Below, piece by piece: positions 25,156-41,933 of a stretch of 64,000 nt of DNA; the first letter of the stretch is position 1; each line of letters starts with the position of its first letter. The stretch comes from Hemiscyllium ocellatum (taxonomy: Eukaryota), in the NCBI RefSeq assembly GCF_020745735.1, contig NC_083435.1, positions 31,185,231 to 31,249,230 of the forward strand, given 5' to 3'. Below the pieces are notes generated by a model. The model did no database searches, was not told the DNA's origin, and saw nothing but the letters and a program-made list of their open reading frames with translations. Made by a program: the position numbers and the translations under genes.

Positions 25156-25219
25156 TCACCCCAGAAACCTGGACAGGTCTTCTTTGATCTCCGCTTCATC
25201 CCACGGACCGTGGATGTTG
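25156..25219 (-). CDS. PIGC: PIGC coding exon 8 ([21 protein letters not shown])
   Basis: Conserved GPI2/PIG-C C-terminal IHGPWDEA motif; ccccacag acceptor; TGA stop. Confidence 0.96.
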
Positions 25220-25719
25220 CTGTGGGGAAGGCAGAGAGAAGATGGAGTCAGGCATCAGTCAGTGCAACCAGCCTACCCGTGCACAGACAGCACCCCCTGC
25301 CATCCGACCCACGTCACCACAGCAGAGGTGGGCTATTCAACCGGGATTGCGTGGGCAGAAGATCGCGCCAGTTCCCGGTCCTCCACATGTGTGAACAGTC
25401 AGCGACTGGGTCGGCTTCAAAGCTCCAGTGAGTGCAGCCATGTCACCAGATCATGTGAAACAGACGTGGCATTTACAAAGCCTTTCAGAAACCACACAGA
25501 TGTCTCAAAAGTGTTTCCCAGCCAATTATTCAGCTCCAGGATTCTATACCACCCAGCAGTCAGTTCACGCGCAGTGAGCTCCTTCGGCGTTGACCCCCCC
25601 CCCCCCGACGGTGCCGCACCACCCCACCCCCCCCCCTCCTCAGCACTGAACGGATGACCAGAATAAGCCTGACTGGAATTTCGGCCCACACTACGGGTGC
25701 GCTGAACGCTACCACTTAC

Positions 25720-25886
25720 TCTTTCGAGGACTGTAACTTGATGAGGTAGTGAGGACACAGCAAGGCAACTGCTAACAGCAGCAGAGCAAAGAGTACAGCT
25801 CCCGTGAGAGAAACCGTCAGCACTCCCAGCACGGCAGCCAGGGTGAAGATAAGGGTGACCACCAGGTAACAGCGAGGGGTGATTGC
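25720..25886 (-). CDS. PIGC: PIGC coding exon 7
   Basis: AITPRCYLVVTLIF...LLCPHYLIKLQSSK. 167 nt, phase 0-2, gtaagt donor. Confidence 0.93.
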
Positions 25887-27357
25887 CTGGACAACAAGAG
25901 AATAGAGAAACAGAAAGAGATACTATTAACTGAGCTGGCTGATCAATACACCTTCTAATATCTGGACCTGGCCATACTCTTCATCCCAAGATTAACCAGT
26001 GCTGGGCTGTACAACCATGATAGCTGGGGAGGAGTGGGTGTGCTATGGACACTGATACTCCGCACTTCAGGCTCTCTGCCTTTATTCCTGATAAAGGGCT
26101 TTTGCCCGAAATGTCGATTTTATTGCTCCTCGGATGCTGCCTGAACTGCTGTGCTCTTCCAGCACCACTAATGCAGAATTTGGTTTCCAGCATCTGCAGT
26201 CATTGTTTTTACCTAAGGACAGCTACTCATTTCCATTAAGTTTCACAGCATTGGACCTCCCAACTTGCACAAGGGTCAGAAGTGGAGGCATTCACTGATA
26301 GAATGAAGTCCAACACCATCTGTGACTCCCAAAACACTGAACCAGTTCATGCCCTAAGACCTGAACCACACATCTAGGCTGGCTGGGACCGAAGGGTGGC
26401 AAGTAACATTCAAGTCACACAACTGCCATTGCCCTGATTGATACTAATGGCATTTCCATCGCTTCAAAAGCATCTTGGTGGTTCCCAGTGACCACAAAAT
26501 GAACTGGACTAGCCATACAGAAGCAGCCTGGATTCACGATTGCTGCTTTCACTCCTGTCTCGTCAAAGCCTGTTCATACGATGCACGAGGGTGGGACGGA
26601 ATGCTCTCCACTTACCTGGATGGGTGCAGCTCCAACAATACAGACTCCGCACTGTGTAGGACCCAGCCACTTGCTGGTTAACACTGCACCCACTACCCGT
26701 AAGAGTCACTCCCTTCACTACGGTGCACTTTGGCTTCAACATGTCGAAACTCTACAGGAGTAACTCATCAAGGCCCCTTGAAACAGCACCTTCAAACACA
26801 TGCAGCTCACCGTTACCTTCCCCAGGTCAATCAAGGATGGGCAGCGTAAGCTGGCCTGGACAGTGATGCTCACGTCCCATGAATGATTGAAATAGGGCTC
26901 AGCCCCATCTGGATGTCCAGTATAAAGTTAGTCCCAGGGCCTTGTACTACATAGTAAGCAGCCACACAGTCAGTGCGCCCAAGACAGGAGGGGAGGACTC
27001 ATCTGTGCAACGTTTCACTCTTGCCAAAAGAAAGGGAATTCCATTTTTTCTCACTAAGCAGAGTGAGGGTACAGTCAAAGAGCAGTGGCAAATGGCGGAG
27101 AGATAAGGAAGCAATCGGCGACCCATTGTGAGCCACCCCATAACCTGTGGCCAATGCATTCAACCCCCACCAAATGCCCCCAATCTCGCAGCCCTCCAGC
27201 ATCCCCTCCAACCCCAGAACCTTCTCACTTCACACCCGAGCGCTCACCGTCCAGTCCTCCATTTCCCCACCCCTTCTGCATCCCCTCAACCTCGTCCTTC
27301 ACCTTGATGGTCCCTCACACCCCATGGTCCCAGCACGTCCTCCACACAAAGCCGCAC

Positions 27358-27505
27358 CTTCAGCTTCTTCTGGAACATGGGCCACAGGGCGAAGACCTCG
27401 ATGGCCAAAGTCACTGTGACGAAGGCGTGGAGCGAGCTGGGGAGTCGCGAGGCCAGGCACACTGAGGCGAAGATGGCCATGTTCAATGAGAGAGTGCTGG
27501 AGACG
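27358..27505 (-). CDS. PIGC: PIGC coding exon 6
   Basis: [22 protein letters not shown]...[12 protein letters not shown]. 148 nt, phase 2-0. Confidence 0.96.
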
Positions 27506-38775: not shown

Positions 38776-40499
38776 TTTATCTCTTCAAATTGTGAACTCT
38801 ATTCTTCATTTTGAATTTTCTTTGTTGCCACATGCTGGTCTGAATTTTATTTCTTACTCTTTTGCTTTCAGAGGTATTTATTACTCTGCTACCTGACACT
38901 TGCTTTTTTTCCCTTGTATACAACCCTTTGTGCCCTGTCATCTTCATTATTTAATCTTGTATTCTCTACTCTCAGACATTCCTTGTCCTTTCTCCTCCTG
39001 CTGCTTTACAGCAGCATAAAACCTGTCATACTTCCCAGCACCTGATCAGTTTTGAAATCACATTGGGGTCAAAACATTGATTCTGTTCCATTACCGACAG
39101 GCACTGCCATTACACTGCTCCATTACTTTGTACTTCAGATGGCCAACACCCACCAGTACTTAGCTTTTATTTATTGCTCTTCCCCAATGGCCCTTAAATG
39201 GAGGGGCATAGAGGGCAGTTAAGAGACAACTGTCTTGTTGAATACATGCAATCACAGGTAGGCAAGACTATGAAAAAACGGCAAAGTTTGCTTTTTCTCA
39301 TAAGGATATTAGTAAATCCAATGGGGTTTTACAACAATCGGTGATAGTTTGATGCGCACCTTTATGGGAGGCTAACTTTACAGTCTAGATTTAAGGTGGA
39401 ATTGTTTCCAGTGGCTGAATTATTTTGATACTTTCTAAACTTATTATCAAAACCTTCCATGCTCTTGAACACCTCAGTTAAAAAACCTTCTTTGCTCAGA
39501 GACAAGCCACAGTTCCTCAAGCTCTCCACCTGAGCTGATCTGTGTTATCTACCCTGGTCCGAATCAATTAGTCTTCTCCATGGCCATTCCAATCCTAGAC
39601 ACGAAGTATCAATGGTGCAAGCTGCCAAATGATTCCCAGCTTCAAATGCTTACTCTGGCAGTACAAAACGCATATTATTCAGTTCTGTGTTACGAGACTA
39701 CATATTGAACGATATTACAAAGTGGATGAGATTTCCCCCCCTTGACACTCCATCTTTCCCTTGTCACTCAATGGATATTGACACAATTTTGAACTCAGCC
39801 CAATCAATCTATGTCCTGGGTGTGAAAACGCTGAATATACAAGACTGACCAGCCCTTAGCTACACCCTTTCCCTGTACACACAATGTGGAAGCCGAATTT
39901 ACAAAGCAGCAACACAGCAATAGATTCTGCTGGCAATCCAAGATACAAAGGATGGTTCCTATTACAGGCAAAACCAATCTCTCTGAAATGTCACACAGAG
40001 GGTGGTATGTGTATGGAATGAGTTGCCAGAGGAAGTGGTGGAGGCTGGTACAACTGTAACATTTAAAAGACATTTGGATGGGTGTATGAATAGGAAGGGT
40101 TTGGAGGGATATGGGCTGGATGCTGGCAAGATTGGGACTAGACTGGGTTGGGATATCTGGTCAGCATGGACAGGTTGGACTGAAGGGTCTGTTTCCATTC
40201 TGTACATCTGTATGACTCAGAAAGACCTAACAGGGACCTGGGAGCATGAATTTTATGAGAAGGAAATATGTAATAAAATCTCAGCCCAACATAAAGCTGC
40301 ACAGATTATGGGTGTATCAATTGAAAATGTCAAGACAGGCGTGGGTACATTCTTGCTGGGTGAGAGCTTTAAATAATGGAAGCTAGAAACATTGGTTAGC
40401 CAAGACCTTATCGTCTGCAAACTTAGCCAGAATACTGTCAGTTCTTTCATCAAGATGGTTAATGCTCGCCACCTCCCATTTCCTGCGTCCCTCATACGA

Positions 40500-41720
40500 G
40501 GCTGGGGAAGGGGGGAATGCCCCACATTAGGCTGGGGGGGTAGGGGAATGCCCCACATTAGGCTGGGAGGAGGGGAATGTCCCACATTAGGCTGGGGGGG
40601 TAGGGGAATGTCCCACATTAGGCTGGGGGGGGTAGGGGAATGCCCCACATTAGGCTGGGGGGGGTAGGGGAATGTCCCACATTAGGCTGGGGGAAGGGGA
40701 ATGTCCCACATTAGGCTGGGGGGGGTAGGGGAATGCCCCACATTAGGCTGGGGGGAGGGGGAATGCCCCACATTAGGCTGGGGGGAGGGGGAATGCCCCA
40801 CATTAGGCTGGGGGGAGGGGGAATGCCCCACATTAGGCTGGGAGGGGTAGGGGAATGCCCCACATTAGGCTGGGAGGGGTAGGGGAATGCCCCACATTAG
40901 GCTGGGAGGGGTAGGGGAATGCCCCACATTAGGCTGGGAGGGGTAGGGGAATGCCCCACATTAGGCTGGGGGGTAAGGGAATGCCCCACATTAGGCTGGG
41001 GGGTAAGGGAATGCCCCACATTAGGCTGGGGGGGGGGGTAGGGGAATGCCCCACATTAGGCTGGGGGGGGGTAGGGGAATGTCCCACATTAGATTGGGGG
41101 GGGAATGTCCCACATTAGGCTGGGGGGGGAATGTCCCACATTAGGCTGGGGGGGGAATGTCCCACATTAGGCTGGGGGGGGAATGTCCCACATTAGGCTG
41201 GGGGGGGAATGTCCCACATTAGATGGGGGGGAATGTCCCACATTAGATGGGGGGGAATGTCCCACATTAGGCTGGGGGGGGAATGTCCCACATTAGATGG
41301 GGGGGGGGAATGCCCCACATTAGATTGGGGGGGGGGAATGCCCCACATTAGATTGGGGGGGGGGAATGCCCCACATTAGATTGGGGGGGGGAATGCCCCA
41401 CATTAGATGGGGGGGGGAATGCCCCACATTAGATGGGGGGGGAATGCCCCACATTAGATTGGGGGGGGAATGCCCCACATTAGATTGGGGGGGGGAATGC
41501 CCCACATTAGGCTGGGGGGGAATGCCCCACATTAGATTGGGGGGGGGGAATGCCCCACATTAGGCTGGGGGGGGAATGCCCCACATTAGATTGGGGGGGG
41601 GAATGCCCCACATTAGATTGGGGGGGGGAGGGAATGCCCCACATTAGGCTGGGGGGGGGGAGGGAATGCCCCACATTAGGCTGGGGGGGGGGGGGGGGGG
41701 GGGGGGAGGGAATGCCCCAC
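40500..41720. repeat. G-rich minisatellite (GGGAATG[C/T]CCCACATTAG[GC/AT]TGGGGGG), about 26-33 bp unit
   Basis: About 40 tandem units ending about 45 bp from the PIGC exon 1 donor. Confidence 0.95.
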
Positions 41721-41767
41721 AGCTGTCTCTACCCCCCCCCCCTCTGTCCCTCCCATTTCCCACTCAC

Positions 41768-41933
41768 TGTTTTTCCGCAGTTCCTCCAGGAAGCTGCCGT
41801 CCACGAAGTTATCGGGGAAAGGCTGCCTCTCGTACAGGACCTTCTTCCAGCGGCCGGCCCGGGGCCGGGGCGCATTCTCCGAGGCCCTGCGGCCTGACAC
41901 AGCGGCCACCCCGGGCTCCAGGGCCGCCCTCAT
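41768..41933 (-). CDS. PIGC: PIGC coding exon 1 (GPI-GlcNAc transferase subunit C)
   Basis: MRAALEPG...[28 protein letters not shown]; gtgagt donor. The 8 exons total 939 nt, giving 312 aa with consistent phases. Confidence 0.93.

Follow-up and report, generated by a model that had tools for sequence, protein, structure and literature searches.

PIGC, the C subunit of the GPI-GlcNAc transferase, acts in the first step of GPI-anchor synthesis; its gene is essential, has a housekeeping role and is linked to human disease. To our knowledge, the absence of introns from the human PIGC coding region has so far gone unexplained, and our literature search for PIGC as a retrogene, an intronless gene or a single-exon gene returned nothing relevant. 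Compared with the PIGC of humans and other bony vertebrates, the shark gene described here has seven coding introns instead of none and lies in a different chromosomal neighbourhood. Could the shark have kept the ancestral gene, and, if so, where did the intronless one come from?

The shark gene in sequence and family context

The gene was found in a 64,000-nt stretch of Hemiscyllium ocellatum DNA (NC_083435.1, positions 31,185,231 to 31,249,230), hereafter the window, where it runs on the minus strand from position 41933 to 25156. The initial annotation had described an intact 312-residue PIG-C reading frame in eight exons, with GT-AG introns and consistent phases, and the script with which we placed the exons reproduced this model exactly. 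Its coding sequence totals 939 nt (312 codons plus the stop), and no in-frame stop occurs across the eight exons of 166, 70, 155, 113, 56, 148, 167 and 64 nt. Exon candidates for this model were chosen singly, each in the correct frame; chaining exons by size and GT-AG borders alone had yielded 2507 chains and was abandoned in favor of these per-exon candidates.

All seven introns have the form GT...AG, with a pyrimidine-rich tract before each acceptor AG, and their phases are 1, 2, 1, 0, 2, 0 and 2. The donor reads GTRAGT or GTAAGC in every intron but intron 6, where it is GTGCGG. Exon 1 (41768–41933) begins with the ATG at 41933 and ends in phase 1 at a GTGAGT donor. Exon 2 (36819–36888) lies between the acceptor ...ttccgttctag and the donor gtaagc. 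It is followed by exon 3 (34751–34905), exon 4 (30183–30295), exon 5 (29078–29133), exon 6 (27358–27505), exon 7 (25720–25886) and exon 8 (25156–25219), whose 64 nt include the TGA stop and encode a 20-residue C-terminal stretch that is conserved in the alignment. Intron 1 contains a minisatellite (40499–41692) of about 41 copies of a 26–32-bp G-rich unit, which begins 75 bp past the donor of exon 1 and accounts for the peak in GC content and GC skew at 40–42 kb of the window.

Five of the exon translations match the Pfam GPI2 profile (PF06432, 270 positions) collinearly, namely exon 1 (profile 1–27, E = 3.9e-10), exon 3 (53–92), exon 4 (101–136, E = 3.8e-11), exon 6 (161–207, E = 1.9e-16) and exon 7 (211–262), and three of the five exceed the 24.4-bit cut-off individually. 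The window protein thus follows the full-length profile of the PIG-C/GPI2 family, carries the family's conserved 12-residue C-terminal motif and shows no protein-level difference from it. Over its full length it shares 90% of its residues with the NCBI PIGC of Stegostoma tigrinum; identity is 96.6% over 236 aa with the PIGC of Chiloscyllium punctatum and 70–75% with tetrapod PIGC. The first two values mark the window as DNA of an orectolobiform shark. Between the window and Stegostoma, dN/dS is 0.11 at a dS of 0.33, and identity is 90.6% in the coding sequence vs. 68% in intron 7. The collinear GPI2 matches, the identity with the Stegostoma and Chiloscyllium proteins and the low dN/dS show that the exon series is not a chance chain of open reading frames. 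Judging from its intact reading frame and the purifying selection on it, the window gene is a functional PIGC.

Ancestry of the seven introns

Representative homologues were searched for with exon 6 as the query. The gene models of a coral (Oculina), a hemichordate (Saccoglossus) and a nemertean (Lineus) were re-derived from DNA by exact spliced mapping with a minimum exon length and with GC donors allowed; the Stegostoma protein was likewise mapped exactly onto its own locus. The Stegostoma exons measure 178/70/155/113/56/148/167/61 nt with phases 1, 2, 1, 0, 2, 0, 2, so that the internal exon sizes and the phases equal those of the window. The same series of phases was found in Oculina, with exons of 172/70/155/113/56/148/167/61 nt, and in Saccoglossus, with exons of 106/70/149/113/56/148/167/46 nt, where intron 6 is of the GC-AG type. 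Lineus has six of the seven introns; only intron 4 is absent, so that exons 4 and 5 form a single exon of 169 nt.

Exon by exon, the agreement is close. Exon 2 is 70 nt long in all four mapped multi-exon homologues, and exons 6 and 7 are likewise constant in all four, at 148 and 167 nt. For exon 3, Stegostoma, Lineus and Oculina share the 155 nt of the window and Saccoglossus has 149 nt; in Stegostoma, Saccoglossus and Oculina, exons 4 and 5 keep the shark lengths of 113 and 56 nt. In the alignment, the seven introns occupy identical columns.

The initial annotation had named intron positions shared with no outgroup as the finding that would speak against an ancestral intron-rich gene. Instead, position and phase agree for 7 of 7 introns in Oculina and Saccoglossus and for 6 of 7 in Lineus, which makes the shark structure ancestral and not a gain within sharks. 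The eight-exon structure therefore dates back at least to the last ancestor shared by cnidarians and bilaterians. The converse history, in which an intronless PIGC is ancestral and sharks gained the introns, is refuted by these same identities, found no point in its support and can be set aside.

An intronless gene at another locus

The gene structures sampled for bony vertebrates were those of bowfin (Amia), herring (Clupea), frog (Xenopus) and lungfish (Protopterus); chimaera, lamprey, hagfish, bichir and coelacanth lie outside this sample. In each of the four, the range from start to stop equals the length of the coding sequence: 888 bp in Amia (295 aa, in two assemblies), 882 bp in Clupea (293 aa), 969 bp in Xenopus (322 aa) and 876 bp in Protopterus (291 aa). 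These coding regions consequently have no introns, and all four sampled bony vertebrates carry a single intronless PIGC coding region. Their proteins align through all seven junction columns, and no partly intron-bearing intermediate was seen in the four lineages. An insertion of 13 aa in Latimeria was considered as a retained intron and rejected: it is a Gly/Ala-rich run that precedes the intron 5 site by six residues.

The intronless state is found in ray-finned fishes, lungfish and frog, and the switch therefore predates the split between actinopterygians and sarcopterygians. The initial annotation had proposed that the intronless mammalian gene may be a retrocopy that took the place of an intron-rich parent, or else had lost all its introns by cDNA conversion. 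The replacement itself gains support from the ancestral introns and the different locus, but its restriction to mammals does not hold, since ray-finned fishes, lungfish and frog have the same form.

In the protein tree, vertebrate PIGC is monophyletic (100/99), and the window and Stegostoma are sisters (100/99) within Chondrichthyes (100/100), while the gnathostome backbone is a polytomy. The AU test does not reject one common origin for the intronless gene (p = 0.37). Among the best 120 matches of 667–794 in each of three annotated-proteome searches, we observed one PIGC per species and no lineage with two genes; the matches listed included no second PIGC in shark or ray proteomes and no PIGC of chimaera or lamprey.

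What are the neighbours of the gene in the two groups? In the window, the last coding exon of a ZIP transporter gene, SLC39A7, was recognized among the open reading frames at 21374–21628 on the plus strand. This gene is convergent with PIGC, the two stops lying about 3.5 kb apart. A feature search of the neighbour returned the Zip family with a score of 0.95, which confirms a ZIP transporter and not which one; the name SLC39A7 is taken from published gene tables of catshark and white shark, in which pigc adjoins slc39a7 on the MHC chromosome (PMC10751288 supplement). In the same tables, shark PIGC is a gene of the MHC proper, with COL11A2/RXRB/HSD17B8 on one side and the MHC-Ib/B2M/BRD2/class II genes on the other. 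A Zip gene (PF02535, 456 aa) is equally convergent with PIGC in Stegostoma. In the ray Hypanus, a multi-exon PIGC of 18.6 kb faces a convergent neighbour of 444 aa, which is similar to SLC39A7 in size and was not assigned. The results show that, in elasmobranchs, PIGC and SLC39A7 are tail-to-tail neighbours within the MHC.

In Amia and Clupea, the gene order is Sad1_UNC (SUCO-type; 1278 and 1419 aa, respectively), EMP24 (TMED), PIGC and dynamin. This neighbourhood agrees with the human cluster of DNM3, PIGC, C1orf105 and C1orf9 at 1q24.3 (PMC3573227), and the shark and Amia/Clupea loci are non-syntenic. An intronless bony-vertebrate PIGC at the shark's own position, which the initial annotation had set against its proposal, was thus not what we found: in Amia and Clupea, the gene sits at the SUCO-TMED-dynamin locus. 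A further observation concerns invertebrate PIGC, which has a conserved divergent neighbour. Sought as a synteny marker, this gene was not found in the flanks of PIGC in the window, Stegostoma, Xenopus, Amia, Clupea and Oculina; it gave weak matches in Pfam, none in PDB and only generic coiled-coil clusters in the Atlas.

Probable retroposition with loss of the parent, and the alternatives

Retroposition followed by loss of the parent is, in our judgment, the best mechanism for the origin of the bony-vertebrate PIGC, with a probability of about 0.6. A spliced PIGC mRNA would have been reverse-transcribed and inserted beside DNM3. The insertion would have taken place before the split between ray-finned and lobe-finned fishes, and either after the cartilaginous fishes had branched off or earlier, in which case they would have lost the copy again. 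The retrocopy would then have acquired a promoter and assumed the essential role, and in bony vertebrates the parent with its introns, adjoining SLC39A7, would have been lost. On this reading, the PIGC of bony vertebrates, including that of humans, is probably a retrogene that arose more than 420 million years ago, and its intron-bearing parent persists solely in cartilaginous fishes, where it resides in the MHC. We infer the retroposition event itself; any poly(A) tail or target-site duplication is expected to have decayed over the more than 400 million years since. Between retroposition and a cDNA-mediated loss of the introns in place, the relocation of PIGC favors retroposition.

Bony-vertebrate PIGC combines three of the features expected of an orphan retrogene: an intronless coding sequence across all junctions, an ancestral multi-exon form and non-syntenic loci. 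It resembles in this respect the orphan retrogenes PIGM, CHMP1B and RRS1, which are likewise intronless and strongly conserved and have non-syntenic multi-exon counterparts in the outgroup (Ciomborowska et al. 2013, PMC3548309). As in those cases, the PIGC alignment covers every ancestral exon junction, and PIGM even belongs to the same pathway. On the other hand, PIGC would differ in that its parent is confined to cartilaginous fishes and in that the event, which precedes the ray-fin/lobe-fin split, is much older. PIGM is among the 25 human orphan retrogenes listed in that study and PIGC is not; the screen compared human with chicken and worm (PMC3548309), and the comparison with chicken would miss PIGC if the chicken gene is intronless, as it is in the bony vertebrates sampled here. 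If the retrogene reading is correct, PIGC would join the few genes in which a retrocopy took the place of its parent, as a well-dated case and, after PIGM, as the second one from the GPI-anchor pathway.

The strongest of the alternatives, though an unlikely one, is the reciprocal retention of ohnologues, that is, of MHC-paralogon duplicates. PIGC would have resided in the proto-MHC before the two vertebrate genome duplications, after which cartilaginous fishes would have kept the 6p21-type copy and bony vertebrates the chromosome-1-type copy. The copy on the DNM3 side would then have recombined with its own cDNA and lost all seven introns in place at once. We take DNM1 (9q34), DNM2 (19p13) and DNM3 (1q24) to mark MHC paralogues 9, 19 and 1, and the SUCO-DNM3 locus at 1q24.3 to be part of MHC paralogue 1. 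A publication tying the DNM genes to the MHC paralogues was not found in our literature search; the paralogue framework itself is described in PMC10751288. With shark PIGC in the MHC proper and bony-vertebrate PIGC next to a dynamin gene, both the old locus (6p21-type, with SLC39A7/RXRB) and the new one (1q24.3-type, with DNM3) would be MHC-paralogous. That would be odd for a random insertion, as a retrocopy inserted at random would reach one of these regions in only a few percent of cases, and it keeps the ohnologue scenario alive. The tree, with the AU test, is equally compatible with it. However, two rare events are needed: duplicates that survived to the split between cartilaginous and bony fishes and were then lost reciprocally, and the loss of 7 of 7 introns. 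Such a complete loss in place is very unusual in vertebrates. Furthermore, the best 120 matches of each search included no lineage with two PIGC genes, and no partly de-intronized intermediate was seen. Because both loci are taken to lie in MHC-paralogous regions, a few public genomes can discriminate between retroposition and the reciprocal loss of duplicates.

It is still less probable that the retrocopy is older, having arisen in a stem gnathostome or stem vertebrate and coexisted with its parent for a time, the retrocopy being lost later in sharks and rays and the parent in bony vertebrates. The polytomy at the gnathostome backbone is compatible with such a course, and the earliest date is unconstrained, as cyclostomes and chimaera are outside the structures sampled. 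Nevertheless, this history requires one loss more than the simple scenario, and the matches listed contain no second PIGC in the shark and ray proteomes.

A translocation of PIGC at the DNA level in one lineage, with the introns lost separately, appears quite improbable. Relocation and intronlessness are both observed, and nothing observed ties the two to a single event. However, the neighbours differ on both sides, so only PIGC moved, and a solitary move in which all seven introns disappear is what an mRNA intermediate leaves behind; a transitional state was also missing from the four bony lineages.

The gene models are already in public annotation, and what is gained here is an evolutionary reading and not a new type of element. 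In the description of the elasmobranch MHC by Verissimo et al. (2023, PMC10751288), the tables for the extended class II block show the same pigc-slc39a7 arrangement as the window, while the main text is without PIGC and addresses neither its gene structure nor its absence from this position in bony vertebrates. PIGC is a resident gene of the elasmobranch MHC that had gone unremarked.

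The eight-exon shark gene and its ancestral structure

When the gene model of the shark PIGC (GPI-GlcNAc transferase subunit C) was rebuilt by script, the ATG was located at 41933 on the minus strand; exon 1 is 166 nt long, with GTGAGT directly after it, and the 64-nt last exon closes with the TGA at 25156. We searched for AG...GT-bounded open segments of the sizes given in the initial annotation, in the required frames, and for each exon there was a single candidate that combined a PIG-C-like translation with a good donor and an acceptor preceded by a strong polypyrimidine tract. 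Exons 1–8 lie on the minus strand at 41933–41768, 36888–36819, 34905–34751, 30295–30183, 29133–29078, 27505–27358, 25886–25720 and 25219–25156. The model comprises 939 nt encoding 312 aa, and its seven introns (4879, 1913, 4455, 1049, 1572, 1471 and 500 bp) have phases 1,2,1,0,2,0,2. The eight-exon, 312-aa PIG-C gene described in the initial annotation was therefore correct in all its numbers.

Five exon translations matched Pfam GPI2 (PF06432), collinear along the profile, and exon 6 alone, searched against 1.84 billion representative proteins, recovered PIGC proteins; named relatives were gathered afterwards. Identity to the window protein is 90% for the PIGC of Stegostoma tigrinum, 96.6% for that of Chiloscyllium punctatum over exons 1–6, and 82–87% for those of other sharks and rays, which places the window in an orectolobiform shark. 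Between the window and Stegostoma, the coding sequences gave a dS of 0.33 and a dN/dS of 0.11, and identity was 90.6% in coding sequence versus 68% in intron 7. By these comparisons, the window PIGC is a gene under purifying selection rather than a decaying parent copy.

To date the structure, the DNA of annotated PIGC loci was retrieved and each protein was placed back on its own locus with an exact spliced mapper. With the stop codon excluded from the last exon, the exons measured 178/70/155/113/56/148/167/61 nt in Stegostoma, 106/70/149/113/56/148/167/46 nt in the hemichordate Saccoglossus kowalevskii and 172/70/155/113/56/148/167/61 nt in the coral Oculina patagonica, all with phases 1,2,1,0,2,0,2. 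The nemertean Lineus longissimus (145/70/155/169/148/167/40 nt, stop codon likewise excluded; phases 1,2,1,2,0,2) lacks only intron 4, since its 169-nt exon equals 113 + 56. In a protein alignment, all seven introns fell in identical columns and phases in the window, Stegostoma, Saccoglossus and Oculina; therefore, the structure is at least as old as the cnidarian–bilaterian ancestor. The eight-exon structure is ancestral, and lineage-specific intron gain in sharks is excluded by the matching columns and phases. The outgroups support the proposal that shark PIGC may be of the intron-rich parent type, with seven of seven positions common to Oculina and Saccoglossus and intron 4 alone missing in Lineus. 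Saccoglossus intron 6 (7864–8637 of its PIGC locus, L007) is a GC-AG intron with the donor GCAAGT; the shark donor at this place is a weak GTGCGG.

Two forms of PIGC at different loci

The start-to-stop distance equaled the coding length in all four sampled bony vertebrates: 969 bp for 322 aa in Xenopus tropicalis, 888 and 885 bp in two assemblies of Amia ocellicauda (295 aa), 882 bp for 293 aa in Clupea harengus, and 876 bp for 291 aa in Protopterus annectens. Direct translation of the locus DNA gave the PIGC protein in the first three, while Protopterus was judged by its range alone. The four proteins span all seven ancestral junctions uninterrupted in the protein alignment. The coding region is intronless in all sampled bony vertebrates, a state thus common to ray-finned fishes, lungfish and tetrapods. 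The intronlessness that the initial annotation gives for the mammalian gene is therefore no mammalian feature, being found in ray-finned fishes, lungfish and frog too.

In Amia and Clupea, the gene order is a Sad1_UNC gene (SUCO-type; 1278 and 1419 aa), an EMP24/TMED gene, PIGC, and a dynamin gene that is convergent with PIGC and 1.6–3.2 kb downstream. This neighborhood corresponds to that of human PIGC, which is clustered at 1q24.3 with DNM3, C1orf105 and C1orf9/SUCO (PMC3573227). Xenopus PIGC (10001–10969 of its locus, L001) is nested in an opposite-strand 201-aa gene without a Pfam match (L001:312–17083, minus strand), which resembles the nesting of human PIGC and C1orf105; unlike in Xenopus, no host gene surrounds PIGC in Amia or Clupea.

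The window PIGC, on the other hand, is convergent with a ZIP transporter gene; the last exon of that gene extends to 21628, and ~3.5 kb separate it from the PIGC stop. In Stegostoma, too, PIGC is paired with a convergent Zip gene (456 aa), and in the stingray Hypanus, where PIGC spans 18.6 kb, the convergent neighbor is a 444-aa gene. Supplementary tables of Verissimo et al. 2023 (PMC10751288), whose main text does not mention PIGC, place slc39a7 and pigc adjacent and convergent on the MHC chromosome of catshark and white shark; in catshark, the pair (35.61–35.66 Mb) is flanked by COL11A2/RXRB/HSD17B8 on one side and MHC-Ib, B2M, BRD2 and class II on the other. In Amia and Clupea, the intronless PIGC does not occupy the shark position: it lies between TMED and dynamin, and the shark copy beside SLC39A7 in the MHC. 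The intron-rich form thus persists in elasmobranchs, and the two forms are at different loci, as the proposed retrocopy would have it.

The 22 kb upstream of PIGC (42000–64000) contain only repeat-derived ORFs, with LINE reverse-transcriptase fragments at ~52–53 kb and CR1-like tails, and no convincing host gene. The catshark and white shark tables (PMC10751288 supplement) are consistent with this, since they put the next gene ~100–200 kb from pigc.

Saccoglossus and Lineus have in common a head-to-head neighbor of PIGC, a coiled-coil protein of 554–562 aa with a lysine-rich N-terminus (minus strand; L007:1017–1295 and 2253–2420; in the Lineus locus L008, 1017–1166 and 1633–1758), 76–90% identical between the two phyla along a 92-aa stretch. 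Such a conserved gene pair would date back more than 500 million years. The neighbor is absent from the PIGC flanks of shark, Xenopus, Amia, Clupea and Oculina; the ray Hypanus has a divergent neighbor of similar size (536 aa).

Origin of the intronless gene

When a gene has moved by itself and has none of its seven introns left, this is the textbook sign of an mRNA intermediate. A PIGC mRNA would have given rise to a retrocopy at a new locus in bony vertebrates, and the intron-bearing parent would have been lost afterwards; we give this reading a probability of roughly 0.6. A published list of human retrogenes that took over from their parents includes PIGM of the same pathway but not PIGC (PMC3548309). 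On the retroposition reading, PIGC would be an orphan retrogene whose parent survives in an outgroup, a neat and well-dated example with an MHC-paralogon twist. Multi-exon shark PIGC models (annotation) and the pigc–slc39a7 adjacency (annotation and the PMC10751288 supplementary table) are already public; our search of the literature on PIGC gene structure and retrogene origin found no paper that reaches this evolutionary conclusion.

Could the two forms instead be genome-duplication copies, reciprocally retained, one of which lost its seven introns in place? The shark locus is in the MHC proper. In bony vertebrates, PIGC is next to DNM3 at 1q24.3, in the stretch from RXRG/PBX1 to TNR, and the three dynamin genes DNM1, DNM2 and DNM3 are at 9q34, 19p13 and 1q24. 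The MHC paralogue framework comprises human chromosomes 1, 6, 9 and 19 (PMC10751288), and on this basis both PIGC loci would be parts of MHC-paralogous blocks, as expected of retained duplicates; of random insertions, no more than a few percent would give this result. However, in-place loss of seven introns is very unusual in vertebrates, there is no two-copy lineage among the matches listed, and the sampled lineages include no intermediate structure; we consider this origin unlikely, though it is the one rival to be taken seriously. Retroposition older than the cartilaginous/bony split, a variant of the retrocopy reading, seems more doubtful still.

In a tree of 33 PIGC proteins (LG+C20+F+G4), vertebrates were monophyletic (100/99) and hagfish branched off first, and Chondrichthyes (100/100), Actinopterygii (97/96) and tetrapods (95/94) formed clades; the tree gives no resolved order among these three, lungfish and coelacanth. 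Constraining bony vertebrates to one clade cost 1.9 log-likelihood units (AU p = 0.37), so that one common origin of the intronless form is compatible with the data, though not demonstrated by the tree. Terminal branches were long in Latimeria (0.74) and hagfish (0.75), with lungfish at 0.21. The stem of Amia and teleosts reached 0.87 substitutions per site versus 0.28 for the bichir lineage, which suggests a burst of protein change in early neopterygians. The unusually divergent Latimeria protein (P0263) has 13 additional residues, rich in Gly and Ala, inserted six residues upstream of where ancestral intron 5 lay.

Repeats in and around the gene

Intron 1 contains a G-rich minisatellite of 1.2 kb (40499–41692; 26–32-bp unit, ~41 copies, 88–91% matches), which stops 75 bp short of the exon 1 donor and accounts for the peak of GC and GC skew at 40–42 kb and for long ORFs of repetitive sequence on both strands. 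Furthermore, one retroelement tail occurs in several copies, on both strands, in the introns and flanks of PIGC (33340–33690, 38182–38331, 45750–46139 and 4982–5449), with RLGLFSLE.RRLRGDLIEVYKI among the motifs that recur in its ORFs. This tail is one of the common interspersed repeats in the Hemiscyllium ocellatum genome.
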